From: Bugula neritina
Taxonomy: Eukaryota; Animalia; Bryozoa
NCBI GenBank assembly: GCA_964035545.1
Contig: OZ037769.1
Span: forward strand, 434,001-498,000
Direction: 5' to 3'
DNA length: 64,000 nucleotides
The position numbers were made by a program, and so were the translations under genes. Position 1 is the stretch's first letter, and each line of letters opens with the position of its first letter. Shown piece by piece: positions 6,053 through 63,841 of the stretch. The notes under the pieces were generated by a model. The model was not told the DNA's origin and did no database searches. It was given only the letters and a program-made list of their open reading frames with translations.

Positions 6053-9164
<3,112 letters not shown>

Positions 9165-14316: not shown

Positions 14317-15899
<1,583 letters not shown>

Positions 15900-30524: not shown

Positions 30525-31049
30525 GTGCTTGGTGAGGACAACTTCTTATATACATGGAAAATGTCCTGGAATAAGTGCACAATTATATAACCAGCTATTA
30601 GCTTGCATGTAATAATCTAGCGATCAGGTATTATTAGAACGTTATTGCTCTTTTGTTTAGCTGCTTTATATAAACTAAAAGCTTGATGAACAAAGCTGTG
30701 TAATTGTACACATTACAATACTAAACAAACAATACAATACAATAGAATATATTTTGTTAATACAACTCAAGGAATGTGCTTATAGCTAGTAAATGTGATT
30801 CAATTTATAGAATTTGTATTCACTTATTAAGTTTACAGGTTATTAGTCTCATTCAAGACATATAAAGAGGTGGGGAAATATTTCCATAATGCTCAAGCTA
30901 AGGCTAAAACATTATTGCAAGTATACTTCCTCTTTGAATAATATAGATTTATTTTAGCAATTACCCACTTACCTTTGAGAACTGAAGTACGCTAGTTTAT
31001 CTAATGGAGATTTAACTACCTTTACTTGCTACTTCATAACATGCAGAAG
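30525..31049 (+). promoter_or_regulatory. Upstream region of receptor A, duplicated upstream of receptor B (about 43535-44039)
   Basis: Long shared blocks, e.g. GATCAGGTATT.TTAGAAC, CAATACTAAACAAACAATACAATACAATAGAATATATTTTGTTAATAC.ACTCAAGGAATGTGCTTA and TTTGTATTCACTTATTAAGTTTACAGGTTATTAGTCTCATTCAAGACATAT. Regulatory role inferred from position only. Confidence 0.55.
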
Positions 31050-34000
31050 ATGCATTGGAGAGTTTCTACTCTCAGTTTGCTGGCTGTCCTGCCATTTGCA
31101 GAATATATATCAGGTAGTTGTTGAACATTTCTATTATAAGCTAATGCGTTCTGCACAAAAATAACAATGTCGTGCTCAGTTGGTTGCTTCATTTTATATC
31201 ACTCAAGTAGCTTTCGACATATAGTACTTTGAAACTTAAATGATAACAAAATAGCATAAACATTTTTCAAGCTTGTTGAGTTTTTTATAAAAATAAATGT
31301 TGACTTTTTTGTTTTAATATAATATGAAGTTATAAAACTTGGTGAGACTGTATACTGATATTAATGAATATATGCTCACATTACATGTTTAGTGATTATA
31401 TGACAGTCAATAATAATTAATATTTATTGTATACAATAAGTTTTATTGATAGCTATAGTGTTTGTATATTAACTTATTATAGCAACTATAATTTATCTTT
31501 AAATGATAGTACGATGCCTATACTTTTAACATTATTATTATAGTCTATAAACTAGAACTAGTTTATAGTTTATCAAGCAATGTGCATTATTATTATAAGG
31601 CTGATGTTGCAGCTTTGTGCGGCAAATGACCAAAATACTTGTTGAGTGCTTTGTAAATAATAACTATTATATAAATTCATACCAACAATTCATCGCATAT
31701 CAAAGCCAGTTAAAATTATGATGAGGTGGACAAGATAATCAAACAAATATAATGTTTTATGAGAACAGGAGTTTTACACAAACATGTTCTAAATATTTCC
31801 ATGTAATCAAAGTTCAAATTGTAGACCTACATTATAGTGGATCACTGTTTGACACATTTGGCTATATAGCTGCTTATATAACTATTGTAAAATATGACCA
31901 AAACTTGGATCTGTATTTCTCAGCCTCCACAAACTTAGCCAAGGGAAAAGCTGTATACAGCAGCACATCTACAGATTCTCATAGACCTCCAGCAGCAGTA
32001 GATGGAGAGAATAACTCCTACTTTAAGAGTTCAACTTCTGCTAATCAGTGGTGGATAGTGGATCTGGGAGGATCTTATTATGTGGGAGTCATTAAAGTGT
32101 ACAGCTCTCAGTGTAAGACATGTTTATTATAGATGAATCTCTAAAAGAAACATATTATAGTTTCATTGCTGATGCTCCATATATTCATGAAATGTGATGT
32201 TTGTTTGAAATGTAATGGTTTCAATCTCTTAATATTAATGCTATAATATTATAGAATCTTAAAAAAATGCAGCTCAAATACTAATTTACTCAGGTCTTCA
32301 AGCTGTACCTGATAGAAGTTTATGCTAATATATAAAATATTTGCTCAATTAAAAGTATATTATAGTAAATTCGATAATCTTTAGTAAGGTAAATAAGGTG
32401 TGCATGAAAAGTTTAAATATAGACTATGATGTTTGCCTTTTTATCTTTTAAAGAAAATTGGTTTAAGGTTTAAGTTGTACAATTTTGACAATTAAATCAA
32501 ATGAAAACTCAGCTTCCATGTAGTGATGGTGAAATAATTTACTAAGATTTGTTGTACAGTTTGCACAATCTTAGAGTCAGTGTGAATTTATTTGCAAGAA
32601 CCAGAAATTGTTTGAACATCTAAAATACATTATTATATAACAATGATTAAATGATTTGACTGTATAAACTGTGTCACTATTTAATTATGAAATTATCTCA
32701 AATAAGAATGACAGCTTGTGTTATTTACTGCAAAATAATTTAGTGCAATTTATACAACTCCATGGAATAACTTATAACTTCAAAATATTGCAGATGACAA
32801 GTTCCAGGAAGTCTCCATATTTCTATCAAATACTGAGACTGTATCAACCTCTCCCCTTGACCTTCCAACCAACAATGACTGGACAGAATCAACTTCACAG
32901 TTCAGTTTTACAGCAGATGGTGATGACTTTGTGACCTACATAACGTCATCACAAGATGGGAGTTTATCAGAAGCTAGACACGCTGCTGTGTACAGTACAA
33001 GTAGTGGTGGTTTAGTAATCAATGAAGTAGAGGTCTATGGTTATGGTGAGTGTTTCAGGTTATAATATAATATAAACTAGTTAGGAGGGACACACAATAA
33101 ATGTGTTGGTTTAGTAATTTGTTAATATTACATGACCATATCCCACTGTCACCATGCAGTAACTGTTTTATTTTCATTAGAAAACATTTCCCTTTTACTA
33201 CATTGTTTTAGATAAAATTTGAAAAATATTATTTTTTATGAAAATTATCTCAACATTTTAAATGAGAAACATATATTTAATTTTTTCATGTGTAAATTGA
33301 ATGAATATATTATATACAGTAACATATTTTCCATATTGCATATTTAACTCTATATAAATGACTGCTCTAAATCTATAAGCATTATATACAACTATAAATA
33401 ACATACTATACTGGGGTATATGTTGATGTATTATATAGAAGTATTGACTAGAAATGTGGCTGTTGGAAAGAGTGTTAGAAGTAGTTCAGTGAACCCTAAC
33501 AACAGGATAGCTGAGAAAGCTAATGATGGACTCATAAATAGCGATACCTTCTACAGATCTGAGAATATTGCTAATCAGTGGTGGAGAGTTGACCTTGACA
33601 CTCAGTACTTTATTGTGGGAGTTCTGATGTATAACCATGGCATTATAAGTATTATTTTCACTAAAGTCTAATCCGAGTATTACAGTCAGTGAAACACAAT
33701 TATTTCATCTTTATCTCATTGTGTTGTATTATATACAGTATGAATCATAAAAATTCGGTGGTATATTTTGTCTCCTGTAATAATCCATTACTTGATAAAT
33801 TGAGCTAATAATTGGAAATAGTTTTTTCAGCTGGTAATCATAAGCAGTGCTTTATATTTGTTTCCTGCAGCTTTCAAATTATAATAAAGAATCTGTAATT
33901 GCATTTGTTATCTTTTGATTTAAATTATTTGCTACAAAAAGGATTTTGCAGTTTATATATCTCGTATACAATACCATGCTAACTTGTTTTATGTAGTACT

Positions 34001-37000
34001 ATATTATATGTTGCCATGCATATGGATGGCTGTACGACTAAAAACTGAGATGTAGCTTATAGGATTGATTGTTGAAATGAGGTTTGCAGTATTTACTACT
34101 TATAATTTACTGCATTATAATAAGTTGCTATATACTATTGGTTATTTTAAGCATCACGTCTTCAAAAAGCTCACCTATTGGCTGCCAACACAGAAATAGA
34201 TCCTGACCCAGACAGCACTGAGTGGACTGAGTTATACTATCAAGATGAATATATTACTTATTCTATTCCCAACAACTACTTTCAGTATAACCCTATAGAT
34301 GAGGGAGATCCCCTCTCAGTATACAGATATGTTGCTCTTTACTCTACATATTCTGGAGGTCTAGTTATAAGTGAAGTTCTGGTATTTGGAATTGGTAAGT
34401 CTATAGCTAGCTAATATATAACATGATAATCAATGTAACAACATTGCACTGGAAAATTGCAAAATTTTCGATCCAATAGGAAATCTAATACAAATACTAT
34501 TTGAACAAATGACCACTGACGATATAAAATTATTCAAATGTTTAAACTAAAAGTTTAGCACCTCAAGAAGTTGATGAATTAAAGTAGTTATATATAAATT
34601 ATAATTTAATATTTCAGGAAAGTCAGAGTTGCTGGTAAAAACTCTGAGAGCAGAACTCAAAGACCCAGACTGTGTGAAAGTGAACTGGGAGACTCCTTTA
34701 ACTGACACCTACACTTTTCAATATCAGGTAAATTTAGACACGCAATATTTATTACATTTTCATAAAAATATATATGAAATAGTAAAAGCGGGGTATTAAT
34801 ATATAGATATACTTGTATGGGCATCAAATTCAGAACTTATTTACTTTTTGTAGATTTCGTGCAAGATTTTGACAAAATTGTTAGCCAGTTTTGAGTATAT
34901 ATGTAAGTATATTAATTATTATACTTATATATATATACTCAAAAACTGGCTAAAAATTAGTATATACAATATTATAGATTGTCGATATATTATTTACTTT
35001 ATATTTCATGCATCAAAAAGTAACTATATATGTATTACTGTCTATTTTATATAACAAGTGAAATATTATCATATATAGCATAACGCACTCAAATAGTAAC
35101 TATACCGTATATAATACTGAGTATATTATAACAGGTGAGATACGACTCTGGTTCCTGGAAGGACACAACTACCAGTCTATTTGATGAAGAATGTGGATTC
35201 TCAGCATACAAGGAAGTAGAAGTAGAAGTTAGAGTTGTTGGATCTGATAAAACTGAGAGTAAATCTCTCACCACTAACTGTGCAGGTAAATGTTAGAAAG
35301 GCCATTTAAAATATGACAACAGAACAGTACAGTATAACTATAGAACAGTTTTCAATGAAAAATTAAAAAAATTATAACATGATAACCAAATTGTATCATT
35401 TGTTAGCAAATAAAATATTGTGAACTATCAGATATTTATATGAGACCAATATTAATGTATTTTCTCATTTAATTTGCTTAACTAATCCATTTTGGTTAAG
35501 TTGCATTTTAATTCTCTGCAGTTTGATTAAAGTTGCTAAAAATATTACAGGTAATTGTTTGCATATAATATAAGCTTTTTTATTATACTGTGTTTATGCA
35601 GAACCGTCAAAGCCAAGGGAAGACAACTTACAACATGTAGAAGTTAACAACTTAGGAAGGAAAATGTGGAAATATTCTATTTCCTGGAAGGTTTGTGTTT
35701 ATTATTATTCCATTCTGCATTCCCTTAACATGTTGCCGTCATGGGAATATAGATCTTCTTAGGTTTTACTAGTTATATACTTGTTTATAAATGCCAGTCA
35801 TAAAACATTAATGAGATTTTATAGAGCTGTATAAGCTAGGTCATGTGTATTTTGAGCTAGCACAGCATGCTTACCATTTTATATATACTGCATATCCACC
35901 AGGCCCCTTCTGCCATAAACTGTGAGAGTATAACTGAATACAAGATAAGATATCCAGATGTGACATCAGAAGAAATAGTGACTACAGACACAAGTTATGA
36001 AGTGTATGTTGAGGGTGGAGTTGAGTTTACTCTCTCTGTCAGAGCTGTTAATAATATGGGTCTTCATTCTGATTATCTTGTCATTACAGAGACTTCTCCG
36101 AAACTTGGTAAGGAGTTTTATTGAATTGGGAAAAGAAATTTAACATCCTTTTAAATAAATCTATTATTTTATTGTACTTTTATCTATTAGTGCTGTAGGC
36201 TTTCTAATTTCTAGTGCAATGCTATATTTTCAGCGCCACAGTGGGGATCAGTTACTGTTACCATGGAAACACTCAACAGCTCCTGTGTAGAACTAACATG
36301 GAATAGACCAGAGTATCCTGGGGGTGACATCATAAGCTATCAGGTCTGTCATAATATTAAAACAGTATCAGCCATTTGTTTTTGAACTGAAACACTATTA
36401 AAAGTGAACCTGCTCAGTTGATTATTTCTACTTATGTCATCTATCTGTACTTGTTACAGTCATTACCTAAAAAAGTGAATTATTCAGAAAAACTCTACAC
36501 TGTATTCAGTATTTAATTAATGTAACATAAACAACTTTCAGCTTACGTGTACAAACATGGCCGCCATGGACAAGCTACCCTCAACCTCTACAAGTCATAC
36601 TGTATGTGGATATTCAGCTTATACTTTAGTTGAGTGTAGCATCAGTGCTGAGAACAAAGCTGGGTTTGGAAAGTCTACAGAGTTTAATCCTGTCTACACA
36701 AGCTGTGAAGGTTAGTTGTTGAATTACATCAGTTTCATAGTAAAATCCTCGTTTCATTTTGACTGTTTTACTGCATATGTGTGAGTTTTGGTTATTCTGT
36801 TTTACTTCAAGTTAAATTCTGTATTTCTTGATGTAATAAGTTTACAGATAATGATCTCATAATTACTATAAATTCAAGTGTTTCCATTCAGTACAATATA
36901 TATATAAGCTATCTTGCAAGATTTTATGATTTGGCTATTTTTAGCTATAATAAGTATGCAGTGAATCAAAAACTGTTAACTGTTTTAGCTCCTGTTTTAC

Positions 37001-39177
37001 ACCTGCCTGCAAATCTTTCTTCATATGTAAAACAAGAAATTTCTATGAATTCAATTAGAATATTTCTCAATATATCAGATGAGGTGAGTGAAGCTTTTAG
37101 ACCTGTTTGTTTTAAGTAATATACAAGCCAAATTGCTATTGTATTGGCAGCTCAAATATTATAACCTAATGAACATTTTGTATGTTAATATAATATTTTT
37201 TGTAAATTTAAGAAACTTAAGATATTGTAACTCTCAAAGTATTTTCAAACATGTAAATGTTGTCAGTATTGTACTTTGGGTAAAAAATCAAGCCATGTAT
37301 TAGACTGCAAGTTTTTACTTCGGAAATAAAATAATTTGCTCAACATTCTTATTTAACATGAATAGATATACGTTTTCCAGTTTTATTTTTAAGCATGCCT
37401 ATTATCACACAATAATCAATATGACTTTGTTGCTTTTCTAGAACGTAGCTTTAAACTGTGATGAGCTGACTCGGTTAGTATACAGAGTGGATACAGAGAG
37501 TGAGTATACAGATGTTGGTGAATATATAGAAGGTTTACAACCTGGTACAGAGTATACAGTGGAAATCAGAGCTGAGAATAATGCTGGCTTAGATACAACT
37601 CAGAACTTTGACATCGTTACTGCCGGTAAGAGCTTTATATCATAATATGCAACTTCATCACAGTTTAATCACATTATATTGATTTACTTCAAGTTTAGCT
37701 ATAAGCTTAGGGATCCTAATTCATACTAAATTTGTTTCATGTGTTGATATAAAATTGAGCAGAATTTTTTATAAGTTGAGATGCTTTTTTTAAAAGATGA
37801 AAAGTTTTACCATGTCAAATATATACATAGTTCAGCAATTTTAAACGTCTGAACTTTTAAACAAGAATGGTTCCTATAAATAAACATTTAAGAAATTTCT
37901 AAGAGCAATTCTTTAAAATTTTTGTATGAATCATAATTACAGAAATTTCAACTGTAAGCCCAAAGCAAACTGTGCTATATGAGAAAAGACTAGTTGATTA
38001 TATAGCTTAAGTTACCAAGAAATACCCTTTCAGATGTGGAGAGAGTATGTCCACCTCCCCCATCTGTTAGAAATGCTGAAACACTGAGCACTCAGTCAGA
38101 CAGGAGGATAGACTCAGTAGTAACATACCTCTGTCTGGAAGGATACTACCGGACAGGAAGTGCTCAGCTCACTTGTGTTGTGGAGGAAGGAAAAGCTGTC
38201 TGGTTAGGAGAAGTACCAGAATGTGATGGCAGCTCAGGTTTGATATGAGAGCTTATATAGTTGTGATAAAAGTTCTGTGAAGTGTTATACCAACTCTATT
38301 ATGAAGAATCTTTATTCAAAATGTATTTATATTTCACAACTATATAACTTTATCCTTTAAATTCATGTATCTCTGTAAAGCTTATGTCCTCACTGGGATT
38401 CCAACCTGAAACCTCCAGTCCGGTAAACAGGAGCACCAACCATCACACCACTGGGTCACTGAATAACCTAAACATTATAATGTCTAACTATAGTTACTGT
38501 AATTTCAAGTTGAATGGCACTAGAATAATCATTTATTGTAGTTTATTGTTATGCATTTACACCTGCTTTTTGAAACAGAAACATTTTCTTCTTTTTACTA
38601 TAGCCTACTGCAAAAAACTTTAACATATCAATTTTACAGCATATAAATACTCAGACTGTCAGCTTCGCTCACAGATGCACACTCTTCGTTTGTATTACAG
38701 TGATTAGTTTTCTAATGAACTTTTCTTACGACTTTAGAATACAGAACTGCTTTACTGTCTGTTGGAGTAGCGTGTGGTCTGGTAATACTAATCCTCACAG
38801 CCATCATATTCATACTGGTTAGACAACTCTATATCAGAAAGTACACTGACTCAGCTCAACAGAGCAAGTCCACTGATGAATACGAAGAAGTCGGTCCCAA
38901 CCATCTCCACCCTGTGATGTCACTTAATGAGTCAGTTGAGCTCCCAGTGGCTAGTGTACCACACGCTCCAGTCCCTCCAGTCTATGAGAGCATAGATAAG
39001 AGGGATACAGTTGCTGATGGTATTAAGGACTACACAGGACTAGAGAATGTTAGCCTCTCTTCCAACTATGAACATCTGAAAGCTAGGCAAAGCTGTAACA
39101 ACTATGAAAGAATGAATTATGATGACAAACCTAGACCACAGGCTGATAAAGTTTATGAAAATTGTGACAAAAATTAA
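31050..39177 (+). CDS. Receptor A: type I membrane protein, 2 F-type-lectin/F5-8C-like + 4 FN3-like + sushi (CCP) + TM + tyrosine-motif (ITAM-like) tail, about 904 aa
   Basis: Exons 31050-31113, 31924-32112, 32794-33045, 33439-33648, 34152-34394, 34618-34727, 35135-35285, 35602-35690, 35903-36107, 36234-36343, 36542-36710, 36989-37083, 37442-37625, 38034-38237, 38738-39177; total 2715 nt, open frame (alternative ATG at 31041). Motifs: NLAKGK..AVDG..QWWIVDLG; ANDG..QWWRVDL; FN3 W..P / Y...VRA.N; sushi CPPPP..YLCLEGY..LTC..W..PEC; TM ALLSVGVACGLVILILTAIIFILV. Confidence 0.88.
38385..38459 (-). mobile_element. Short tRNA-like SINE head, family 1, degenerate
   Basis: Minus strand CAGTGGTGTGATGGTTGGTGCTCCTG..GGAGGTTTCAGGTTGGAATCCCAGTG resembles the copies at 55584 and 63891. 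Confidence 0.55.
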
Positions 39178-39685
39178 CTATCAGTAAAGATTATATAACA
39201 AGTTTCTCAGCTTATATATATATAATGTGCAGACGTGATTTAAAACGCTAAAAAATATTATAACTCACATAAAAATTTCTCATTCACATGTACAGCATAT
39301 TTCACACAAGTCTATAAGCATCTATTTTAGCTCAATGCTATTTTTACCACAAATTTATTTTTAGAGAAATATTTAATGCAATTTACTTTAATTTTGAGTG
39401 TTGTTCTTCTTGTATTATTATATTTAACATTTTCCTATATGTAGTACTTATGCAATATAAACATTTTATTGTTACATATATTCCTAATATTACACAGAGA
39501 GAAATATTAGTGTTAGAGTGAACATTAGCTGACAACTAAAACAGCTCGTTTTTTGGATCCCTAAATTGACCAGCAGTGAATAGAAACTAGTGTCAGGTAC
39601 TGTTCACAGTGAATAGTATGTTAGATCAATGTTGATATAAAGAGTTGTGAAGTTGATTCTTTGTATTTATCACAATGAGCCAAGT

Positions 39686-39915
39686 TATGTTCAATGGTGA
39701 TCTTATATATGTTCAATGGTGAGCTTAAATATTTTCGATGGTGATCTTATTTATGCTCAATAGTGATATTATATATGTTCAATGGTGATCTTATTTATGC
39801 TCAATAGTGATATTATATATGTTTAATGATGATCTAATTTCTGTTCAATGATGATCTTAGATATGCTCAATGCTGAACTAAGTTATATTCAAAGCTGAAC
39901 TTATAAATGTTCCAT
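39686..39915. repeat. 22-bp degenerate tandem repeat (TATGTTCAATGGTGATCTTATA)
   Basis: About 10 visible units. Confidence 0.8.
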
Positions 39916-40220
39916 GCTGCTCTAGTTTTTGTTGGAAATAAGCTTCTGCAAAAATTATTACTAATCACTCTGAACTAACTTGTCATAACTTCTAACCAGT
40001 ATGAGAGTATAGTAATGTGGATTTTATTGTATATGATAGTTGGATATAAGAAATGCAACAAAAAATAACTTCTAAAGATTAAAATAAGAAAAAAAACATG
40101 AAAATAAGCATTTGCAGAATTTTTCTACGACTGTAAATTCAGTTAACTTTTCTCAATATTAGCAGAACCTGCTAAGACCATAGTGTGTGTCATTACATTC
40201 TTGCTCTGTAGTGTAGCGAT

Positions 40221-40520
40221 AACCAAGCAGTTGTGGTGTGTAATGGTTAGCACACCTGTGTGCAAGTCCGAGGTCTGTGATAGTAACCCAAGTACGGGAG
40301 GGGGGAGGGGGAAGTTTTATAACTAATTCTAGCGGTTAGTAAAGTGTGGTAGAACTCCGAGAGAAGTTGAGTGGCCAGGGAAGCTTGAAGGAGTAGTATA
40401 AGAAGGCAGCTGAGTTCTTGAAAAGTGGGTAAGGTGTAGTGTCGAGAGCACCCAGTGAAGCTTGTAATGTAGTGGTGAGTGGGCCTGCTTGCAGGCTGGA
40501 GGTCTCAGCATGATTCAAAG
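40221..40520 (+). mobile_element. Two degenerate tRNA-like SINE heads, family 1
   Basis: GTGTAATGGTTAGCACACCTGTGTGCAAGTCCGAGGTC (about 40237) and CCTGCTTGCAGGCTGGAGGTCTCAG (about 40484). Confidence 0.5.
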
Positions 40521-43500
40521 TTTTGTAGCGGTCAAATTCTTTGTGCTCCTATTCAGCATCTTTGAGTGCATGTTCTTAAAAAATGTTATGGGATCTACAA
40601 CAAAAGATAAAAGTTGGGTAATATTTAAACTGTATTAGTATGAGCAGTAAACATTTGGTTAAGATATACAATCACAAGCAGCTTATAAATTAAGTTCAAC
40701 TTTGAAGAAGCTGAAGTCTAAGGCCAAAACGAATAGTATCAATGATGTTAGCTATGAATCTTTCAGCATATTTTTAGCACCATTATACCAATCGTTTGAT
40801 TCTGAATAACCATACAGGCTTTGGCAAACTTATGATCATTATGTTGCGTAGTGTTTGGGTTAGTTTAAGCTTATCAAAATTTAGTAACAATTTCGGCCAT
40901 CATTTTATTTTACTTCTTTCTTAATTACAAATGCAAAAGCTGTTGGGCATATTTAGTTTAGTTAATAGAAGCTTCTCTGTATTAAAATTATCTCAAAATG
41001 TCAGTGAACCACAATTTAAGCTGGAGTCAGCATTTTATATGGACCCCTCATATCGAGATAACAGATATTGATAAGTTTCAATATGTCTATAAATTGAAAA
41101 ACAAATAAAGTACTACCAAGAAAAATATTGCTACTTAAACATGTTGTTATATTTAATTGTGCTGCGCAAAGATAAATAAAAGAATAAACTGGTAGCACGG
41201 AAGTTAATAAAAAAATTTGCCAACTCACCACTTATATTGGCATTTTGGTACTTAACTATAAAACAAGAAGCTAGCTTGGCAGCTGCTTAAGGCTAATAAC
41301 TGCTTGTAGGCTGCTAAACTGCATTATGATTATTAACAATATGAATAATTCTACAATGGGGGGGGGGGAGAATTTAAATTAATGAATTTAGCACAAATTG
41401 CTAGAAGGTGAAGTGGAAATAAAACGCTAAATTTTTTGAAAATAGATTGTTACAGGAAAACTTGTATCAAATTGATATAGGAATAGAGTAGTTTGGGAAA
41501 TATCAGTTAATGTGGTCTCTTAAAAGTTATAGTTGCACAAATTCAATTATCTGTCTACAGCAATAGTCATACTGATACTGTCATTGTGATATAAAATGAC
41601 AACGTTAGGCAAATGATTGAGCTTACCTTTTGCTGCAATGACAACTTCAGTTCCTAACTCTGAAAGAAAGTGATCATCTTCTATCTCTGAGAGGTAGCTG
41701 CATTCTTTACCCATGTGATGAAATGATTCAATGTTTTCCATGTTGTGAGGTTGTTTGGAAGCACAAATTCACTGAATCTCAAAGCACAACCTTTTAGTCT
41801 GAGCCTCTGGTGTTCACTATGCCGGCAGAATATTTCTTCTGTCAATAGCCATGAATGAAAACTATGTGCTGTTATGTAATAACCTTTGCTTTGCTCTGTC
41901 ACTGCTTGGTAAGCCAGTTTCTTGCCTTTGAATTACAATTTAAATATTTCCTTACTATAGCTCTGTTATGCAACATCTTCTTTTGTTCCACCAGGTAGTT
42001 TACACAAGTTTACACAAGGCTTTTGAAGTGGTTCACCTGATCCACAATTGACTATTCAGTAGCTTGTTTCATTGTTAATTTTAAGCTTCTTGTTTGAAAC
42101 ACATTTGCTGATAACTGAGTACATTGGAGTTTAATGGTGCATCTCCCTGATCTCTCTTTTACACACATTTTAAATTAGCTGGCTTTCCTTTCCATGAATG
42201 AAATTGCCTAGTGAAGCCTAAACTACCCATGCAAGAGATATGTGCAGTTGAAATTTTTTGTTGATAAATTCAACTTAAGTCTTTGATAAACGGAGTGGGG
42301 CAATGTTAAATAGTAGTCTGGTAACAAGCTATTTGAAAATGTCTTGGGTTCAAAAAAATTTCGAAATCATAAACAGCTAGTAGGTTGAAGGAGTTTCATT
42401 TCACTTATATGCTCCCCAGTTGGGTTGTATTTTTTGTTTTGGTACTAAGTATTATATACCTATATACCCTTATATAACGTTCATATCAATTGCTAAACAT
42501 AGAATAACCATTAATATGATATATTTGCAATAATATTTAAATTTTCCCAAATTTGTGTTGAAAAAAAGCATTAAATGCATTAATAATAACATTTTTTTCC
42601 AAAAAAACAAAAAATATAGAAAATGCAAAATTAATAAGTTTATTCAGAGCAAAGAAATTTATTTCTGTGCCAATTATAAAAAGCAATTGACTCAAATTTA
42701 TTTAAATACACATATATTTCAATAGTGTTCAAATAAATTGCATGTAAAATGTATAAATAGCATCTAACTGGGAAGCACCGATTGAAATGACCCAAATGTA
42801 GGGTTCAACTTCATCCTAGCTTCCTATAAAGGTTTGTGATCATCATTAGTGCACATGTGAACGAATAATGTTGTTAGGTGAACAACTGCCAATTGTTCCA
42901 TAATTCTTATGTAAATAAAATTTTGCTTGAACATATGTAGTTGTAGCATTGATCTCACTTTCTGCTCCTATCAACTACTGTTTAGCTTCATTTAGACCTA
43001 GGGATGATGATTACGTAATACTTGTGAAAAGTAGCTTTGACTTAACAACTAAGTGGTTTCAGAGCTACTACAAAATATTTTTCAGCTTACACTAATCGGA
43101 TTAATTTTCAATTTCATCAAAATAAGTGCAGGTCTAACAACTATTAGAGGTGTGGTGCAGGCTATACCGACAATAAAAGGCTCTTTGAACAACTTTAGTG
43201 CAAGCGCTGCACTAATATTTCTCTCTGTGTATATAACACTTTACTTTTTATATTAATAAATCATTGTACACATAAAACACAAATATTCTTGGATTTTTCT
43301 AAAAAGAAGGAAGCAAAATTAATAGGTATCGATATATTTGTAAAAATTATAGTGAATTACTGTCGAGTTAAAACTGAATGATAAATAAGGGACCCATGCA
43401 TATCCGAGAGTTGGCTAAGTGCACTTTTTAAGCAGTTGGTCAAAGGCCATGATTTTTCTGGGCTTTTCAGTCTGCACTTTTTAAATCAACTGCAGAAAGT

Positions 43501-44039
43501 AAATTGCTCAACAGTGCAACATCTGTCGTAAGTTTTGGGATGACAACTTCTCAAATATACATAATAAATCAAAATAATAGAAAATTATACCAGCTATTAG
43601 GTGCCACTTACAACAGTCTAGTGATCAGGTATTGTTAGAACTTTATCGGCTTTTGTTTAGCTTCTTTATATAAATTGAAAGCTTGATGATTGAAGCTGGG
43701 TGTAATTCTACACTTCACAATACTAAACAAACAATACAATACAATAGAATATATTTTGTTAATACGACTCAAGGAATGTGCTTAGCTAGTAAATGTGACT
43801 CAATGTATAGACTTTGTATTCACTTATTAAGTTTACAGGTTATTAGTCTCATTCAAGACATATCAATATCGGGAGGTGGGTAAATTTGTTTATTAGTGCT
43901 TAGGCTAAAGCTAGAAAGTTATTGCAAGTACTTCCTCTTTAAATAAGACACTTGCTACTGCATTCTAATATTAGTAGAGAGAGCTGAAATATGCTAGTAT
44001 ATATCAGAGAGCTCACTTGACTTGTCATACCCTCAGAAG

Positions 44040-53000: not shown

Positions 53001-56000
53001 ATTTGCTAAGCATTCCTATATAACATGAATAGATATATACGTTTTCTAGTTTTATTTTCAAGCCTGTCCATTATCATACAATGATCAATATAACTTTGTT
53101 GCTTTTCTAGAACGTAACAGTAAACTGCGATGAGCTGACTCAGTTAGTATACAGAGTGGATACAGAGACTGAGTATACAGATGTTGGTGACTATACAGAA
53201 GGTTTAGAACCTGGTACAGAGTATACAGTGGAAATCAGGGCTGAGAACAATGCTGGCTTAGTTACAAATCAGAACTTTGACATTGTCACTACAGAGATAG
53301 GTGAAGGTATGATCAGCTAAAATATTTTATTAAACTTAAAAAAATAATAAAAGTATAACAACTAAAGAACAGATTTCTTATTATAATATTCACATTTGTT
53401 TAATCAATGAACCTATTTAAGAGTACACAACTCTTAAGAAAAATGAGCTTGTAGTTGCATCAACAAAATCTCCAAAACCCGGTTCTTGCAACGGTGGATG
53501 TATCGGTGGAGTTATCGGTGGAGTTGTGGTAGGAGTGGTTGTAGTTCTGGTGGTGGTCTCAATTCTGGTGTACAGAAGAAGGTCTGTTATAGTTGTTCCT
53601 GTCAAAAATATATATACTGTATTTTTTATACATAAGTTCAGACTCTTGACATTATAGTTATAAAAATGTGTCATTTTATACCAGTAACATTGCAAGCATT
53701 TCTTTTAAGGAGTCAAAAGTTACGAGCTTCTTTTATTTATATAACCTACAAACAAGTGTTTTTGCATGTCTATAAATTTATTTGCAAATTAAAATAATTT
53801 TAAAAGCGCTTACGAATAGTTATTTGTGTTGAGAGATTTTCATCCAATTGAATAATAATTTAAACACATTAGGGGAAACCTGGGTGATATGAACCACCCG
53901 GGTGTTATGGACCATGCATGTTTTGCAGTGTCCAAGGTTACCAGAAAGTTGTAAAGTATCTTATTGGTTAGAAATAGGAATATCTAACATTCTGTCTACA
54001 TGTTTCAAACTTGTCTCTTTGTCTTAGAAAATAAAGACACATTTTCTCTTATTGCTCGTTTTCTTATAATTTTTCATAACTTTTGAGGATCTATTTTCTT
54101 TGAAAAAAAATTACCTGAAGTAAGGAGCCTGTATTTACAGGTAATGTGTGGGGGGATATGTATAAATACCCAAATAGTATATATAATACTTGTCCACTCT
54201 CTGTAGGAATTCAAAATTTTTGGTGACATGATTTTTGGGTGATATGGACCGCCACTTGAGGGGTGATATATGGACCGTGGACCATATCACTCAGCTAATT
54301 GAATTTTTCTTTTCATATACTTTTTTAAAGAGAAATAATACTATTTCTCAAGTATTTCAAACAATGCTAAAGCATTAAACCCTTAAATATTGATTAGACA
54401 ACATTATAGCCAATTGCTGTAGAATGTGTACTTGAAATATTCATACTCATGCAATGTATTTTAGATGCCAAGATATTCTTCCAAAAATATTTGAAATGCT
54501 TAGGGTTAGGAGACACCAAAAAAAGCTGTTACACACTTATTTCAGATCTATTGTTTTATGTTACTTTTTAATATAGCAAAATGCATTTTCAACACAAAAA
54601 AGCTGACTTTATGTGACGGAGTCTGTGGTGGCCCATATCACCCGAAATTTCAAAAAATCTCCGGGTGATATGGTCCACCAATTTTCAATCATAGCTCAGT
54701 CAAGCATCTGTATAGGAGCTTCAAATTATGTTTGCATGTTAGTAGAGATAGCACCCACATGTTGAAATACTAATTTTTAATCAACCATAGTCAGTATGGG
54801 CTGTGGGCTTAAGTGGCCCATATCACCCAGGTTTCCCCTATATAGTTTTTATGATCAGTTTTATATCTTCAGGTTTATGCTGCAGAGCAGAGTCTATATG
54901 TGAAAAGCAAACGTGTAATTTATTTATTTTCTAACTTGACAATATTATATTACCTTTTAGTTCATATTTCCAAACTTGCACAATTATATAACTTAGTGAC
55001 TTCACTTGTTCTTCAACAAAAATTTTCATGCTTGATTTAATCAGTTTAACTTATTTTTAGCCAAGTTGTCATTTTTATGGAATGTCTTGAAACATATTTT
55101 TTAGAACCCAAATTAGAGAGAATCAGAGCAAGCTTAAGAACATTTCTTTAGGTATGTGTAATAATTCTATCTCTTCAATACAGCATATTTCTGTCATATA
55201 TTTTGTTCCTATAAAAATCAAACTCTCTTTCATGCAATGCTAACAGATTTATTTGAATTGAAACCAAATTTTTTGCAGATGAGTCTGGTTATCAAAACAT
55301 ACAGCACATAAACAATGAAGTAGGTGATGCCGGAGTTGTCCTTCCTCATAGGACTCCTCGACTGGAAAGAGTAACAAATACAATAAGCATAGCCCCTGTT
55401 GAGCTGCCAGAGATGAGAGACTCTATGCTGCCTCCACAACGCCCTATACCAGTCAGCAGGCTAGCTGACTATATTGAGAACAACGAGGCCGGCATCATTG
55501 ATCAGTTCCAGGTGAGTCATGCAGTTGTCCTGATACTATGATTATGTATAAGTAAATAGTTACTGCATGTAGTGTTTAGATTATACCCAGTAGTTACAGT
55601 GGTGTAATGGTTAGCACGTCTGGTTGCAAGACTAGAGTTGTCGGGTTCAAATCTCACTGGCAGCAATTATTTTAAGGTTACTATAAGAGCATTTGTAGCA
55701 AAATAGTTTACTTTGTGTAAGTTGTACTGAAGTTTGTTATTGCATATTCTTTCAACTGAATTTATTATTATATAGCATATAAAATAATTAATACTGTGCA
55801 CACAATTCAATCTAATAAAAAGTAATGAAAGACTTAGCTGCAAAAACCTTATTCAAAGGAAATAACACAGTCTTTTATATATATCTAAAGTTGACTTTTA
55901 AACTGTGCGATAGACTTTGATAAAAAAATTAGTAGCTTATATAATTATAAAACTGAGATACATCCAAAAAATTGCTGGAAGGTCTATAAAACGATAACAT

Positions 56001-59000
56001 AATATAATATATATGCATATTTGTAGGAGTGTACCTTATTATGTTCAATGTTCAGAAACTTCTCTTTCTTTGTTTTAGTAACACATTAGACCAATTACTG
56101 CACCTTGATCTCATTGCTATTCTCTGAAATGAATTAAATACTATTTAATATTTGTTTCAGTTTTTCTTTCATAAAAATTATGCAAAATATTCATACAAAA
56201 ATTATTCTTTTAATATTCTTTACATGAATACTACAAACTAAATAATGTTAAATATTTACAGATGTTAGAAAAACTTCCAAAACCTAACATGAGTGTTGCA
56301 CAGCTGTCAGAAAATGGCGGAAAGTGCAAATACATTGGATTATATCCAGGTGGGTTTATCTATAATACATTGGATTATATCCAGGTGGGTTTATCTATAA
56401 TACATTGAATTATATCCAGGTGGGTTTATCTATAATACATTGGATTATATCCAGGTGGGTTTATCTATAATACATTGGATTATATCCAGGTGGGTTTATC
56501 TATAATACATTGGATTATATCCAGGTGGGTTTTTCTATAATACATTGGATTATATCCAGGTGGGTTTATCTATAATACATTGGATTATATCCAGGTGGGT
56601 TTATCTATAATACATTGGATTATATCCAGGTGGGTTTATCTATAATACATTGGATTATATCCAGGTGGGTTTATCCATAATACATTGGATTATATCCAGG
56701 TGGGTTTATCTATAATACATTGGATTATATCTAGGTGAGTTTATCTATAATACATTGGATTATATCCAGGTGGGTTTATCCATAATACATTGGATTATAT
56801 CCAGGTAGGTTTATCTATAATACATTGGATTATATCCAGGTGGGTTTATCTATAATACATTGGATTATATCCAGGTGGGTTTATCTATAATACATTGGAT
56901 TATATCCAGGTGGGTTTATCTATAATACATTGGATTATATCCAGGTGGGTTTATCTATAATACATTGGATTATATCCAGGTGGGTTTATCTATAATACAT
57001 TGGATTATATCCAGGTGGGTTTATCTATAATACATTGGATTATATCCAGGTGGGTTTATCCATAATACATTGGATTATATCCAGGTGGGTTTATCTATAA
57101 TACATTGGATTATATCTAAGTGAGTTTATCTATAATACATTGGATTATATCCAGGTGGGTTTATCCATAATACATTGGATTATATCCAGGTAGGTTTATC
57201 TATAATACATTGGATTATATCCAGGTGGGTTTATCTATAATACATTGGATTATATCCAAGTAAATTATTTTAAAACATTAAGGATTTTCTATTTGATATA
57301 CGTGCATTTAAATCATTTTCGTGTTTTTATATTTTCAGCACAAAGCTAGTAAGCTGAATGCCAAGAATCAATTATTTTTTAGTTTAGTTTCAATAAATAT
57401 TTAAGGCACTATTCTAGTCCCTTTATTTTTAGAATGTTTTCAATAATTAAAAATACTATTGTTCACTTAATAAACTGACAAGAAAGAAATATTGAAACAG
57501 TGGCACATAATCTTTAACATTTTGTTACATAATACACAATAATATGTTATTATATTGTTGTCTTTGAAACACCATAGTTATATGCGATACTCTAAACAGA
57601 GTTTGCAGGTTCTCTTTCCTACGCTCAGGTCACCTTTCTGCGTCTCTGTTTCAGAGGACAGTACCAGAGTAATACTAAACAGACCAAGAGAAGAAGGAAC
57701 TGACTTCATAAATGCCAGTTACATCCAGGTAGAGTATTCTCCTTCATGTAAATGCCTTTCAGATGAGTACTTGTTTCACCAGCAAAGTCTGTCTGTACTG
57801 TGTCTGTAATTTTTATCAATCAACTTTATGCTGAATTCACTCAACATAAAAAGTGCTACAGGTATGAAACACTTAGACAAATATGTTTTAATGCTCACTT
57901 CGCATAGTTCTATATCTATATACATCTTTACTACTATACTTGTTTGTTTAGTGCTATAACTATATACATCTTTACCAGTATACTTGTTTGTTTATAGGGT
58001 TACACCAGTGATGATATGTTTATAGCTGCTCAAGGTAAGGCTGTGTTAATATAACAACTCACCATTTCTAACATAGCATGCTCATGAATTCACTGCTATA
58101 ATAGCTAACCTGTTAATTCCTTTGTTATACACCAACTAATGTGTTTTGTTCTAAGATGCTATTAAGTTATAGTTTTAATTTTATTATAAGGCCTAATACG
58201 TTTTAACCTTTTTAAAATTTAATTAAGAGCAGCTTTATCGTTTTTGTATTTTAACTGCCGATCCGATTTGGCTTGGATAATCAGGTTAATTCTTTTGATT
58301 GAGCAACTATGAATAAAACATTGTGGCTTTTGCAAAGTGTATGTTGATATATAGTTATATCTGTTTCACCAGGTCCCCAGCCCGCAACCGTTGATGATTT
58401 CTGGCTAATGATATGGCAGGAGAGACCTAAGGCTATAATTATGGTGACAAATCTATTTGAAAATGGGAAGGTACAACAACTCCAAACGCTTCTCATCCTT
58501 TCCAAACTAATACATTTTGATCAGCATAAGTTCACCCAATACGCAAGACGAGTTATACACACGCATTTACATTATACCATTGTGCTATTGGTGCTATTTC
58601 CTTTGTTTTGTTTTTCTTCTTGTAGGCAAAAGCTGTACAATATTGGCCTGACCAATCAGGAAGCAGTTGTGTGTTTGGTGACCTCAAAGTAACCTTGACT
58701 ACCTGTGAATGTCTAGCTGATTACGTCATCAGAACTCTGAACATTGAAAAGGTACATCATCCCCTGAAGAGTTGGTTTACTGCTACTTCATCCTAAATAT
58801 TTATATATAACTGGTAAACAGTTTATGGTGAAATTATCTTAATCGATTGAATGTAAAGACAGCAAACACTAGCTAGTTTCACATTCTGTCATACATGTGT
58901 GTACTCTAAAACAAAGATATCTGTAATTATGAATAAAACGTTAATAACATTTGTTTTATTGAAGAAAAGACAGTTATTAAATCATAAATGTTTGATTTGA

Positions 59001-62000
59001 ATGAATTTTTTTCAGGAAGGAAAGTCCATGAGCATTAAGCAGTTCCATTACTTGTCATGGCCAGATCACGGCGTCCCACAATACATCAGCCCCTTCCTGA
59101 TATTTGTACGCAGAGTGATGTCAGTGACCAGCCGTATGACTGGCTGCTTAGTTGTACACTGCAGGTAAAGTGTTGTGTATAACAATGCAGGTAAAGTGTT
59201 GTGTATAACAATGAAGGTAAAGTGTTGTGTATAACAATGTAGGTATATAGTGTTGTATGTGTAACGCTGCAGGTAAAATGTTGTGTATAGTGTCTATTAT
59301 GTTTATACAATACATATAACTAACTATATTACTTATTACCCATCACTAAATAACAATAATATAATGGTGATAATAACAATCATATTTACCAAATATTCTA
59401 GGTACAAAATAAAATTAAGATAGCACAAAAAGATATTTAATGACACACTGAAAGATTGGGCTGCATATTGATCATCTATATTGATGCTGGATGTTTCCTA
59501 AAAAGTTTGAGAAAGAGCTTATAGAAGTTTCAACTCTTCAAAAAAGAGAGCTATTACACATTTTGTTACAGTGCAATGAAATATAACCAATTACTTTTTA
59601 TTCTATAGCCATGCATATGATAAGAAAAAAAAGTGAAATCGAAACTATTCTAATTGCGATTATATATATTAAAGTACTTGTCAACAAAACTTTGGGTGTC
59701 TATATTTTAGTGCTGGAGTGGGTAGAAGTGGAACATTCATAGCCTTAGACACTTTAGCTAAACAGGCTCAAGATAGAGGAGAAGTTAATCCTTTTGAGGT
59801 AGTGCGAGCTATGAGGAGAAGACGACCTTGCATGGTGCAGACCAAGGTCAGATAGGTTGTCTTTCCTTGTAAATAATACGCATATAATATGTTGTACATA
59901 TTGAAGGTATTTACAAATGATATAATGCTAAGCTGGATTTAGGTCTAGTAGAACTGTGATTCAAGACCGTATATGGTAAAATGATTTGCATGCTTATTTG
60001 AACAGTTGCTTCAAAATATTCCAAAACAGTTATTAGGCTTGACCTAGGGATTTGCAGTTTGAAAAGACCTGGTAAAGCAATCAAAGAATGTGCCCAGTAA
60101 TTTATAATAAAAAAGTCGTACTATAAACACTTTGATAAACTATTTTAGGAGCAGTACGTGTTCACCCACCAGGCACTGGAAGAGTATTTGGCTACAGATG
60201 AGTTCAGCTGTGAGGCTACGGAATTGGAAACAAAGCTGGCAGACAATAGTGATGATATCTACGTCAATAGGAACATCATATCAGAGGAGTTTGATGTAAG
60301 TTATTACGAGAAGATGTCTTCTTACTATATTGAAGGAATAAGCCACAACATCTACATTGATATACGCTGTTAAAGGAAACACATTTTAGGATTTAGTGTA
60401 TAGGAATTATTAGGTAAAAAGCAAGGTGGTCACAAGTAAATAGTATTTGCATTCCAATTGTTTCCACAATAAACTTGTATTATTTAGTAATAATATCACA
60501 TTATTTCTACTTTTAAACTTCAGAGAATTGAAACTCAGTTAAGACGGGAGATTCACAACTACTCAATAGGAATGGAGGAAAGTAACAGACATAAGAACAG
60601 GTTTCCTGATATCTTACCATGTGAGTCGGTCTGTTGTTGAATGGGAAATTTCTTTATTTACTGAAAGTTGCCATGTAGTATGTTGGCCTTGCTGACCAGT
60701 GCAGCTGTGACTTAGGTTTAGTTTTCACTAGGTGAACTTTTTTTTCAAAGCGAAATGACTATACTTCATAGAGCCTCCTGTAACCTTAACCTTAATTAAT
60801 TTTTACTAAACTAAGCTCTTTAAGTCTGTTTATTAATTTTAGTTTGAGACCAAGGTTAAAATGCTCACAAAACATAATTTATTTTGCTATGATTACAACC
60901 TAGAGACAGGCTTTCTCAGTTTTGTAATTACTGCTTCTCTCTTGCAAGTTTATAATAACCATCCCTTTGAGAAATCCCTGATGCATGAAAGGGGTTTTTA
61001 TTAAATCAGGCTAAAGACTTATTCAGGTAGGAAATAGGAGAAATTATGACTGGATGCTCTTCTTAACATCACCAATGAATGGCTTTTGTTGGGGCTTGAA
61101 CCCATGACCTCGTGCTTATAACGCTCTTACCCCTAGACCACGGCTGCTCCTTGCCATTACTGCTTCTACCTTGTACTTAATTGACAGTATTGCAAGAAGT
61201 GTGTCAGCATTGTATTATCAAATTTATAGGATTATATAAATATTTTTAATCTTTCAAGATGGTTGTAAAATGAACAAACCGAACTGTTTGTGTTGCAGCT
61301 TCCAGACATGGTATCTATGCTGGTGGTGTATACATCAATGCTGTGGTGGTGGATGTAAGTGTAAAGAATATTCTCTTCTATTCAGGCGCATGCTGTTGTT
61401 GCTTAATTTATTTGCATATAGTGCTCATTAACAGGAGCTGTTGGCATTAAGGTTATTCTAAAATGCTGTTTATATATGTTTTAGTAATGTGTTTTTCAGC
61501 AAAAATTTGTTTTACATGTTAATAAGTAATAATAGAACCTCCGTTTTCATATTTATTTTTTGCTTTTTATAGGCTTTATTGATAGTACCATTATCATTAT
61601 TCTTTAATTCTGATTTGAGAGTATTAACGGCTGTTGTCTGACTTGAAGTAGCAAATAGTCCAACAGATAATGAAGTTAGAGATATTTCATACTTTAGAGT
61701 TACCGCAAGAAGCAGAGTGTAATAGCTACTCAACTTCCTCTCTCAAACACTGTCAAGGACTTCTGGACTATGGTGTTGGAGCAAGAGATCAAGGTGGTGG
61801 TGCAGCTGGAAATGGGGGTTTGTAAAACAATATTCTCGCTTTCAAAGACATCAATGATCAAAAGATGTTGTCGTTACTGTGTACTATGATACTATTATAT
61901 AGGTGTCTCTATTTCTAGTAACATTCAAATTAGTACCGATGCAATTATGAAATCACCAGTACCTAAATTATAGCATAATATAATGTTTTATAATACCGAG

Positions 62001-63841
62001 GTACAACTTTATCTTTGTGTCGGTATTTTGAAAATGATATTTTATAGATAAGAAAAATTCATAAACAAATTAAAACAGTTGCATAAAAGTTTAATATTTA
62101 AGAATATTTTTTAAGTTCATGGCAAGAGAATTAAGCAGAGAATTTTATTGCAACAGGAGGACGTGTTCTATCCAAGCAAAGACACGGGATTTGTGGACTC
62201 GGACGGATGTATTGTGAGTCGCACAGGAAGTGAGAATGTCAAGAATGTGAAAATCATCAAACTGACGGTTAAGAGCATAAAGGTAATCTGGTTATTGATA
62301 ATTGTGTTTCTGTGAAACAAAGAGCCAAATATGAAACACATTTTAAATTAGAATTTCATTCAAACCACAATGATAAAAGCATTGTAGTTACTGGCTTATT
62401 AAAATGTGGCAGTCTCACATCTTAACACAGGTATAGTTGATGCAGCAAGCTAGTAAATTATTCACTGTATTGGCAGGTGAGCAACGTTACTCTGATCTGT
62501 ATCAACAACTGGTTAGATGATGGAAACTCTCCCTTCCCTAAACCTGCGTCTCTCCTCTCTTACCTGGGAACTCTGGAGAAATATCAACAGTGGACTGGAG
62601 ATGAGAAGATATGCATAACTGACTTGTAAGTCTCCGTCACATGCTGCCTCTTGTCACTTGCTGCCTGTTTCCTTTACACGCTTCCAGCTGAATTTATAGG
62701 TTTATGTGATACTCAGTTTAGAATTACTGTAAAATCGTGAACTTGACAGAAACAAGGAAGTACATACTGCTGGTTATCAACATTTTAAGAAGCTATCTTA
62801 AGTATCTATAAACCTGATGTTTGGGTCATTATTTTACTAGTAAAGTCTGCCAAACCAACATACCATATCATAACACATGCTAGAATCATTTTAAAGCATC
62901 CATCTGTTAGCATTCGACAACAAAAACAGTGACTGAAGCAAAATATTAATTTCATTTCACTTGTTTAGGATAATAAATTATTTGGTTCATCACTCAACTA
63001 CCTACGTATATCTCCAGGGATATTTCTAGACTTATTTTTCACTTGATGATTACGACATCAAATATAAAATATTTGCTTCAGGGATGGCAGCAGCAGATGT
63101 GGTCTCTTCATCTGTGCGTATGACGCTGTGGAGAAGCTGAAAACTGAACAGGAAGTAAATGTTTACAGCACTGTTCTACGAGCAAGACAAACCCGCCCAC
63201 AGTTTACTTCTAATCTGGTGAGTCATTTTGGCTTTTACTTTTCATTTCACTAAAAGCAAAAATTGTTATTTTTCTAACTAGGAATTATATTTAGAAGTCG
63301 CAATTGATCAAGAAAATAAGCAAATAAATGATAATAAATGAATAAATAGTAATAATTCAGATAAAATTTTCACATTTGTAAGTATGTATGTGGAACTAAA
63401 GAATTGTTTTTACTTTTTTTTAAATTTCAACTAGATTATTTCTGAACAAATAACTAAATTACAAAACATTGCCAGATATTGGTATTGGTATTGTTGCAGC
63501 TTTCATAATAAGGTACTAAGTTTGTTAGCCTTAATTCTACCAGAGTTGATGAATTTGGTGTATAGCTTCTTTAGCAATCCCATTACAAACATAGGTTGTA
63601 TTTTATGCATTATATCAAAAGAAAAGATTTTCAAAGGATTATCCTGTTTTCTTATTAGCTAGGATATATCAGTATTGACTCTCTGTATTATTGAATATAT
63701 GTATATATATTACTGATTTTCTATATTACTGACTATTTATATCTGTTGATGTTGTAGGAAAGTTACAAGTATCTCTACAACCTTCTGCAAGCTTACATTG
63801 AAGGCTTCTCTAAATATGGCAACTTCAAAGTTATAAACTGA
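44040..63841 (+). CDS. Receptor B: receptor-type protein tyrosine phosphatase with 2 F-type-lectin-like + 4 FN3-like ectodomains, TM, D1 and D2 PTP domains, about 1380 aa
   Basis: 31 exons: 44040-44103, 45594-45785, 47109-47360, 47920-48132, 49243-49485, 49737-49846, 50659-50809, 51376-51464, 51710-51914, 52043-52152, 52356-52524, 52685-52779, 53111-53306 (or 53300), 53422 (or 53455)-53581, 55105-55151, 55279-55511, 56262-56349, 57655-57728, 57998-58034, 58373-58470, 58626-58751, 59016-59164, 59711-59846, 60149-60295, 60524-60620, 61299-61354, 61698-61817, 62157-62282, 62477-62625, 63082-63217, 63758-63841. Frame open throughout (4152 nt with the first-listed boundaries). D1 motifs [50 protein letters not shown]; D2 [25 protein letters not shown]. 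Confidence 0.92.
48715..48786 (-). mobile_element. tRNA-like SINE head, similar to family 2
   Basis: Minus strand GGAGCAGTCAAGGTCTATAGGAGTTAGCGCGTT..GGTTCGAGCCC resembles the 5' end of 60961-61150 (GGAGCAGCCGTGGTCTAGGGGTAAGAGCGTT..GGTTCAAGCCC). Confidence 0.5.
53872..54838. mobile_element. Non-autonomous TA-flanked DNA transposon (Tc1/mariner/pogo-like MITE, about 970 bp) in the intron after the TM exon of receptor B
   Basis: TIR GGGGAAACCTGGGTGATATG ... CATATCACCCAGGTTTCCCC; TA at 53870-53871 and 54839-54840; internal GGGTGATATGGACC repeats in both orientations. Confidence 0.87.
55584..55665 (+). mobile_element. Short tRNA-like (GCA loop) SINE head, family 1
   Basis: A box TGGTGTAATGG, TTGCAAG loop, B box GGTTCAAATC; acceptor stem does not pair. 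Confidence 0.65.
56329..57260 (+). repeat. 35-bp tandem repeat (about 27 copies) spanning a PTP exon/intron junction
   Basis: Unit AATACATTGGATTATATCCAG|GTGGGTTTATCTAT; the first unit is the real end of exon 56262-56349. Confidence 0.97.
59161..59290 (+). repeat. About 26-bp tandem repeat (about 5 copies) duplicating the splice donor after the catalytic HC codons
   Basis: GCAG|GTAAAGTGTTGTGTATAACAAT is repeated with increasing decay. Confidence 0.85.
60961..61150 (-). mobile_element. tRNA-derived SINE-like interspersed repeat, family 2
   Basis: Second copy of 7234-7425; the minus strand has A box TGGTCTAGGGG and B box GGTTCAAGCCC. Confidence 0.72.

Follow-up and report, generated by a model that had tools for sequence, protein, structure and literature searches.

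In vertebrate paired receptors, adjacent genes encode near-identical ectodomains that are homogenised by gene conversion, carry variable N-terminal domains and are joined to different cytoplasmic ends. Such pairs are known almost only as combinations of a receptor with an immunoreceptor tyrosine-based activation motif (ITAM) and a receptor with an immunoreceptor tyrosine-based inhibition motif (ITIM), the latter borrowing a soluble phosphatase. No immune or allorecognition receptor locus is established for bryozoans, and the genome paper for Bugula neritina reports only weak similarities to Alr1 (PMC7576161). Here we describe two genes, A and B, in a 64,000-nucleotide stretch of the B. neritina genome (GCA_964035545.1, contig OZ037769.1, positions 434,001 to 498,000; hereafter the window). 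They are linked, adjacent and on the same strand, and they join highly similar ectodomains to an ITAM-bearing tail in A and to a tandem receptor-type protein tyrosine phosphatase (PTP) in B. Judged by sequence, the two resemble an on/off pair of receptors that would serve self/non-self recognition. The architecture is well supported by the sequence; the paired-receptor switch is our proposal from it. We suggest, with a confidence that falls just short of calling it probable, that A and B form a paired receptor module in which both would bind the same or related ligands, A would dock kinases and SH2 proteins, and B would dephosphorylate A and so set a ligand-dependent threshold.

The gene pair A and B

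Self-BLAST of the window revealed a collinear direct duplication (30529-37621 versus 43535-53290) that includes the upstream DNA. Models built from the sequence place A (A1) at 31050-39177 on the plus strand, with 15 exons encoding 904 aa, and B (B1) at 44040-63841 on the plus strand, with 31 exons encoding 1383 aa. Splicing is predicted from genomic DNA, and the four sequencing runs compared were all DNA and show no GT-AG joints; the frames are open throughout, and GT..AG ends bound 14/14 A introns and 30/30 B introns. The two genes agree in the phases of all of exons 1-13 and in exon length in 10 of 13 cases (exon 2, 189/192; exon 4, 210/213; exon 13, 184/196), with nucleotide identities of 77-97% and 536 of 645 aa identical (83%). 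The split falls at the phase-1 intron after exon 13, downstream of which A has a sushi exon and then one last exon with the transmembrane (TM) helix and tail, while B continues with a TM exon and a pair of PTP domains (D1 and D2). A preliminary description of this DNA had claimed that the genes share upstream DNA, a signal exon and 12 further exons with matching phases, that they then diverge abruptly into a sushi-TM-tyrosine tail and a TM-PTP D1-D2 end, and that B stops at 63841; the self-BLAST, the gene models with their equal exon lengths, the Pfam matches and the open frames agree with it on each count. Its domain assignments stood for the F5/8-type C, sushi and Y_phosphatase domains, and for only two of the four FN3-like domains, as described below.

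The A tail fits Yxx[I/L]x6-9Yxx[I/L], the ITAM consensus applied to Hydractinia Alr. The motif is invariant in six tails of this cluster (cluster 1), four of them from independent samples, and shuffling produces an ITAM by chance in ~1.2-1.5% of cases for each tail type. It is flanked by acidic YEEV/YESI and YEN sites; by established consensus the former are Src-SH2-like and the latter Grb2-like. The ITAM lies in the receptor's own tail and the TM helix has no charged residue; with the motif present in all tails, A resembles the activating member of a paired receptor. SH2 genes are plentiful in the genome. A metagenome scan with the A tail gave no match, and a look-alike search with it returned SCIMP, GAPT and LIME1, all scoring <0.9 and thus a lead only. 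The sushi domain of A1 exon 14 is a clear Pfam match (5.6e-10). As a required part of A it was rejected, being absent from the second A copy (A2) and from an A2-like sample copy, so that the earlier portrait of A as a sushi-TM-tyrosine receptor is right for A1 and too narrow for the type.

Pfam places Y_phosphatase matches in both the D1 and D2 exons of B. All of the expected D1 residues are present (catalytic Cys-x5-Arg, WPD Asp, Q-loop Gln and pTyr-loop Tyr, the pTyr loop reading KCKY); D1 is therefore predicted to be intact, and D2, with Asp for the catalytic Cys, to be dead. The signal peptide, single TM helix and PTP domains identify B, by sequence, as a member of the classical receptor PTPs. 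The D1 WPD exon is closest to solved structures of LAR/sigma and alpha/mu-type (mu/kappa) enzymes, which is too little to assign a subtype. B does not have the ITIM-plus-SHP design; a single ITIM-like site is kept in B1 and B2 and reads YQNM in P0012.

The character of B bears on a distinctly unlikely alternative, that the pair is cooperative: a CD45/RPTP-alpha-like B would prime a Src kinase so that co-clustered A becomes phosphorylated, or ligand-driven dimerisation would silence B and let A fire. D1-D2 receptor PTPs are established to act in this way, the solved structures closest to B are of the LAR/sigma, alpha and mu/kappa types, and in Botryllus CD45-like PTPs are expressed along with ITAM machinery in the ampullae (PMC12065747). 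However, there is no sequence mark of Src as the substrate, and CD45-type priming needs no shared ectodomain.

Domain searches against Pfam and PDB were run exon by exon, the joined models being only translated and compared locally. Exons 2 and 4, the N-halves of the two head domains, match the F5/8-type C family, and the best PDB match of the head exons is the F-type lectin FBP32; the C-halves had no match in this exon-wise search. Matches to fn3 are weak and confined to exons 9 and 13, so that the four FN3-like domains are deduced from four phase 1-0-1 exon pairs, two of which score. No Ig match was found by Pfam in any exon scanned. The fucose motif of F-type lectins, HX24RXDX4(R/K) (PMC5712786), is absent from both head domains of A1 and B1, and the cation motif (h2DGx) reads AVDGE in domain 1 and is degenerate in domain 2. 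The heads are thus putatively lectin-fold by sequence, but in the absence of the fucose motif the name lectin is unsupported: a fucose-binding lectin was rejected as an identification, and the preliminary label of lectin receptors survives only as a predicted fold.

Further copies, gene conversion and selection

Directly after the window lie A2 (C5:500649-509273) and B2 (C5:510399-528570), giving the order A1-B1-A2-B2; the preliminary two-gene locus was correct for A1/B1 and had overlooked this second pair. B2 is intact. A2 has no sushi exon, its exon 12 is divergent (~63%), and the normal acceptor of its exon 7 is lost beside a long CA run, with a weak in-frame acceptor 57 bases upstream. The CA run itself (C5:505372-505671, A2 intron 6) reflects either damage to this allele or a fault in the assembly.

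A1-specific contigs of the likely source run show zero differences, and separate contigs hold the sushi-less A2 join. The sushi and tail exons are also present in three further samples, drawn from two studies, in which the introns drop out. Joint Genome Institute (JGI) samples contain four more A tails, three with the sushi exon and one A2-like without it; two of the three sushi exons have intact splice sites (dN/dS, the ratio of nonsynonymous to synonymous divergence, 0.21-0.30), and one copy, on contig L041, has an altered donor. On L041 an A tail is followed by a B-type 5' end, so the A-to-B order is kept in an independent sample. The JGI samples also hold five B juxtamembrane variants. Exons in other samples differ by 5-15% and may represent alleles, extra copies or paralogues, or cryptic species. 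Relatives in the protein collection were found on JGI contigs only, and a search of the full library with exon 5 returned two same-animal fragments and low-complexity noise only.

These records bear on whether the duplication is an assembly artefact or A a pseudogene, for which we see scarcely any room. The A2 acceptor lost to the CA run, the altered donor of the L041 sushi copy and the derivation of the A models from DNA would fit such a reading. They are opposed by the zero-difference A1 contigs, by the sushi and tail exons found in three samples of two studies with diverged introns, by the presence in JGI samples of A forms with and without the sushi exon, and by a synonymous divergence (dS) of ~0.14 with purifying selection. 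The preliminary description's assumption of a real duplication is upheld on these grounds. A haplotype-duplication artefact was likewise rejected, given dS 0.14 and structural differences common to other samples.

The introns of B1 and B2 align at 74-90% and several of those of A1 and A2 at 69-85%, whereas A/B introns 1-4, 7 and 8 are unalignable; the intron similarities therefore record block duplication. By contrast, the exons of A and B are no further apart than those of A1/A2 or B1/B2 (dS 0.12-0.19). Informative sites are divided 12:0 type-wise in the signal exon, and in exons 2-13 there are 28 type-wise versus 35 cross-type sites that occur in runs (30 observed versus 40.5 shuffled, p=0.0025). 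Because the A/B exons are alike and mosaic while most A/B introns are unalignable, the sequence shows exon-scale gene conversion between the A and B ectodomains, which are kept alike in this way while the lectin-fold exons drift fast.

Between B1 and B2, dN/dS is 0.04 for D1 and 0.08 for D2 (dS 0.13-0.15), and the PTP domains are under strong purifying selection. The A tail has values of 0.37-0.43, the FN3 exons 0.3-0.7 and the lectin-fold exons 0.56-0.70 overall, with exon 3 at ~0.9-1.4. As judged from these ratios, both A and B types are under purifying selection. Positive selection was rejected as a proven claim, as exon 3 alone reaches ~1, with few sites.

A second cluster, ~0.8 Mb away at C5:1.27-1.35 Mb, contains A3, A4, B3 and A5 together with one more PTP gene. 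The A copies here (A3-A5) finish with a sushi domain, a TM helix and a tail that bears an 8-spaced ITAM of its own. The cluster-1 and cluster-2 tails do not align, so that a common tail origin is not supported by alignment. B3 has, by sequence, an intact D1 and a dead D2. The ectodomains of cluster 2 are 30-50% identical to those of cluster 1 and share 83-94% DNA identity among themselves, reaching 94% over 5 kb, introns included, between A3 and B3; they also contain an Fn3_PTPRU domain of RPTP type that has a furin site. A precedes B in both clusters, although A:B is not one to one in cluster 2. In a tree of four homologous exon pieces, from which B4 was left out, ectodomains group by cluster and not by tail type (100/100), A3 with B3 (96/96). 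On this topology at least two changes of tail type are forced: either the A/B split would be old and the ectodomains have evolved in concert, or the tail swap would have occurred separately in each cluster.

These comparisons could also describe a modular family without functional pairing, built by phase-1 exon shuffling and neutral conversion, in which A and B are separate in cells or substrates (adhesion, nerve or growth-edge patterning, feeding). We consider this unlikely, though a serious alternative. Neighbouring genes with PPxY-like tails likewise end in an FN3-Fn3_PTPRU-sushi-TM module, conversion requires only adjacency, and the genome has >100 F5/8-type exons, dozens of sushi exons and at least 26 PTP genes; the unalignable tails of the two clusters and the unequal A:B numbers in cluster 2 point the same way. 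Yet both of the unalignable tail types carry the 8-spaced ITAM, A stands before B in both clusters and in another sample, and neither C-terminal type has been erased by conversion.

A further reading, which we regard as improbable, makes A a counter-decoy: a microbe would exploit the B ectodomain, and A would copy it to raise the alarm, following the logic of Ly49H/I and Siglec-5/14, or A would titrate ligand. The head domains evolve fast and are mosaic, ectodomains have been copied repeatedly, and the RPTP-type juxtamembrane domain and furin site in cluster-2 A genes suggest an RPTP origin of that ectodomain. However, both the ligand and the microbe are hypothetical, and the idea is compatible with the switch that we favour.

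Several other loci resemble parts of cluster 2 or of A1. Two more genes at C5:1.23-1.27 Mb (L023-L027) have a cluster-2 ectodomain, extra FN3 repeats and a 3' exon of another kind; at C5:8.289 Mb, a sushi match containing stops is followed by an orphan tail that is A3-like and has an ITAM. Evenly spaced arrays of sushi exons related to that of A1 (~20 at C1:3.24-3.47 Mb and 3 at C5:2.22-2.26 Mb) are possibly further receptor arrays, and additional candidate clusters lie at C3:7.1-8.14 Mb, C5:2.13-2.3 Mb and C1:3.2-3.5 Mb.

Coordinates and neighbouring genes

Table 1. Features of the A1-B1 region, in window positions (TM, transmembrane; PTP, protein tyrosine phosphatase).
Feature	Position	Strand	Remarks
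A1 upstream DNA	30529..31049	+	78% identity to B1 upstream DNA (43535-44039)
A1 exon 1, signal peptide	31050..31113	+	
A1 exons 2-5, two F-type-lectin-fold (F5/8 type C) domains, each over two exons	31924..34394	+	without fucose motif
A1 exons 6-13, four FN3-like domains	34618..37625	+	exon pairs, phases 1-0-1
A1 exon 14, sushi domain, phase 1-1	38034..38237	+	Pfam; A2 without sushi
A1 exon 15, TM helix (38749-38820), 118-aa tail with 9 Tyr, stop	38738..39177	+	
A1 canonical ITAM, YxxL-x8-YxxL	39031..39078	+	
3.7-kb dispersed element between A1 and B1, not genic	39491..43231	.	~21-bp terminal inverted repeats
B1 exon 1, signal peptide	44040..44103	+	
B1 exons 2-5, two F-type-lectin-fold domains	45594..49485	+	
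B1 exons 6-13, four FN3-like domains	49737..53306	+	
B1 exons 14-16, stalk, TM helix, juxtamembrane region	53422..55511	+	
B1 exons 17-24, PTP D1	56262..60295	+	predicted: WPD loop, HCSAGVGR P-loop and Q-loop intact; pTyr loop KCKY for KNRY
B1 exons 25-31, PTP D2 pseudophosphatase, stop	60524..63841	+	predicted: catalytic Cys to Asp, WPD to LDD

The element between A1 and B1 is non-coding, is inserted at a TA site and has at least 30 full-length copies genome-wide at 93-96%. Inside the B1 region, a 35-bp minisatellite of ~27 copies occupies 56329-57286; its unit consists of the last bases of B exon 17 and the GT donor, which makes it an array of repeated donor sites, and B2 has no such array. 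A tRNA-like short repeat, probably the head of a short interspersed element, occurs in opposite orientations at 55584-55660 and 63895-63969, and ARAGORN reported no tRNA for it.

Elsewhere in the window, open frames judged by eye suggest two duplicated small genes on the minus strand (6053-8026 and 14317-15611), in each of which an exon resembling PAN/apple precedes one resembling an F-type lectin. A duplicated exon at 12924-13194 and 19020-19288 (89% alike) resembles the C-half of an F-type lectin domain, and an N-half match lies near 28590-28775. Right after B2, convergent FN3/Fn3_PTPRU/sushi/TM genes with PPxY-like tails occupy C5:529.9-534.1 kb (+) and C5:538-545 kb (-), with two small four-TM genes between them and TRIM-NHL-like genes next.

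Proposed mechanism and known systems

The second cluster, the homogenised ectodomains, the invariant ITAM, the conserved D1 and the A-to-B order in an independent sample leave the paired-receptor architecture better supported than in the preliminary description. The wiring and its evolutionary signature can be read from these sequences; co-expression, ligand, substrate and sign enter the proposal as suppositions. In the switch that we propose, a surface ligand on another cell or a microbe would gather A and B in one contact, where Src-family kinases would phosphorylate the A tail, and the ITAM with its flanking YExx/YxN sites would recruit SH2 proteins, Syk/Shark-like ones among them. Since B reaches equally far, it would not be size-excluded from the contact, and its D1 would strip phosphates from the A tail, so that output would be set by the fit of the ligand to the A versus the B variant. 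B would stand in for the ITIM-plus-SHP step of vertebrate pairs, and as the likeliest setting we see recognition, innate or of self versus non-self, in an animal that is colonial and bears symbionts.

A number of points weigh against this proposal. The splice models are predictions from genomic DNA, A/B co-expression is a supposition, and the A/B upstream regions and first introns have diverged, so that expression may differ. Conversion may act between tandem paralogues regardless of their function, and no whole-region dN/dS is clearly >1. One or two A-tail sites also fit a loose ITIM consensus, but these vary, and a Syk/Shark gene was not identified. CD45, RPTP-alpha and other receptor PTPs are often activators of Src kinases, and for this reason B as the inhibitory partner is unproven.

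If the proposal is true, it would bear directly on kinetic segregation, in that the phosphatase here would equal the activating receptor in height. The ligands and substrates of receptor PTPs are mostly unknown, and A is a candidate substrate next door. The animal also hosts the bryostatin symbiont, and the clusters thus offer concrete genes to genotype in work on fusion, kin settlement and symbiosis. More broadly, they may constitute a bryozoan recognition system in which polymorphic, conversion-matched ectodomains oppose an ITAM receptor to one that serves as the inhibitory phosphatase in its own right, a design that would have arisen repeatedly in several clusters; this would be a third independent molecular way for invertebrates to tell self from non-self or to discriminate symbionts, and Bryozoa would gain their first candidate, a prospect that we hold to be possible but doubtful.

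Among known systems, F-type lectins (AAA, FBP32 and Drosophila furrowed and CG9095) resemble the heads of A and B in the fold predicted from the N-half sequences, in a cation-motif-like AVDGE in domain 1 and in tandem domains, and in furrowed the F-type domain co-occurs with sushi and TM, as here (PMC5712786). They differ in that the A1/B1 domains lack the fucose motif, and an FN3 or phosphatase partner is unmentioned in PMC5712786. Classical D1-D2 receptor PTPs (LAR/sigma, alpha/epsilon, mu/kappa, CD45) have the FN3 repeats, one TM helix, active-type D1 and dead D2 of B, and cluster-2 genes keep the Fn3_PTPRU domain and furin site; here, in contrast, the head is putatively lectin-fold, the genes have expanded in tandem in a lineage-specific way, and siblings without a catalytic domain join an ITAM to the same ectodomain. 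Monosiga reportedly has receptor kinases, phosphatases and SH2 receptors that share extracellular regions (Manning et al. 2008), which would likewise set one ectodomain on opposing phosphotyrosine modules, though in a unicellular organism and with a catalytic kinase in place of an ITAM tail.

Hydractinia Alr, also from a colonial invertebrate, comprises clustered type I receptors with an FN3-like fold, ectodomains that are closer within a cluster and divergent tails bearing ITAMs or ITIMs (bioRxiv 10.1101/2022.03.04.482883). It differs in its V-set/I-set Ig heads and in that inhibition is proposed to run through ITIM and SHP/SHIP; a receptor carrying a PTP of its own is not described for the family, and no homology to A/B is shown. 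Botryllus fester/FcoR are neighbouring gene pairs with a sushi domain, tails of ITIM, hemITAM or tyrosine-core type, and haplotype variation (PMC12065747), but they are Ig-based, pair a receptor with a co-receptor of different ectodomain and have no intrinsic phosphatase. A literature search, with most subscription papers outside its reach, found no case of an ectodomain common to an ITAM receptor and a receptor PTP, in keeping with the preliminary remark that the arrangement was not a recognised one; within the same scope it found no description of sea-urchin 'PTPRLec' or of bryozoan allorecognition genes.

The vertebrate paired receptors (KIR, Ly49, LILR, Siglec-5/14 and -11/16, SIRP, CD200R/R1L, Xenopus FcR-like) are also close, and A/B show all of the features set out at the beginning. 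Their heads, however, are Ig or C-type lectin domains, where A and B have an F-type-lectin fold and FN3; and their inhibitory partner bears an ITIM, where B carries its own D1-D2 phosphatase and A has the ITAM in its own tail. Judged by sequence, A/B are thus like vertebrate pairs, Alr and FcoR in logic and are not a member of those families, having neither Ig heads nor an ITIM partner. If our proposal holds, a receptor phosphatase with a matched ectodomain, serving as the counterpart of an ITAM receptor, would be a different wiring of paired-receptor logic.

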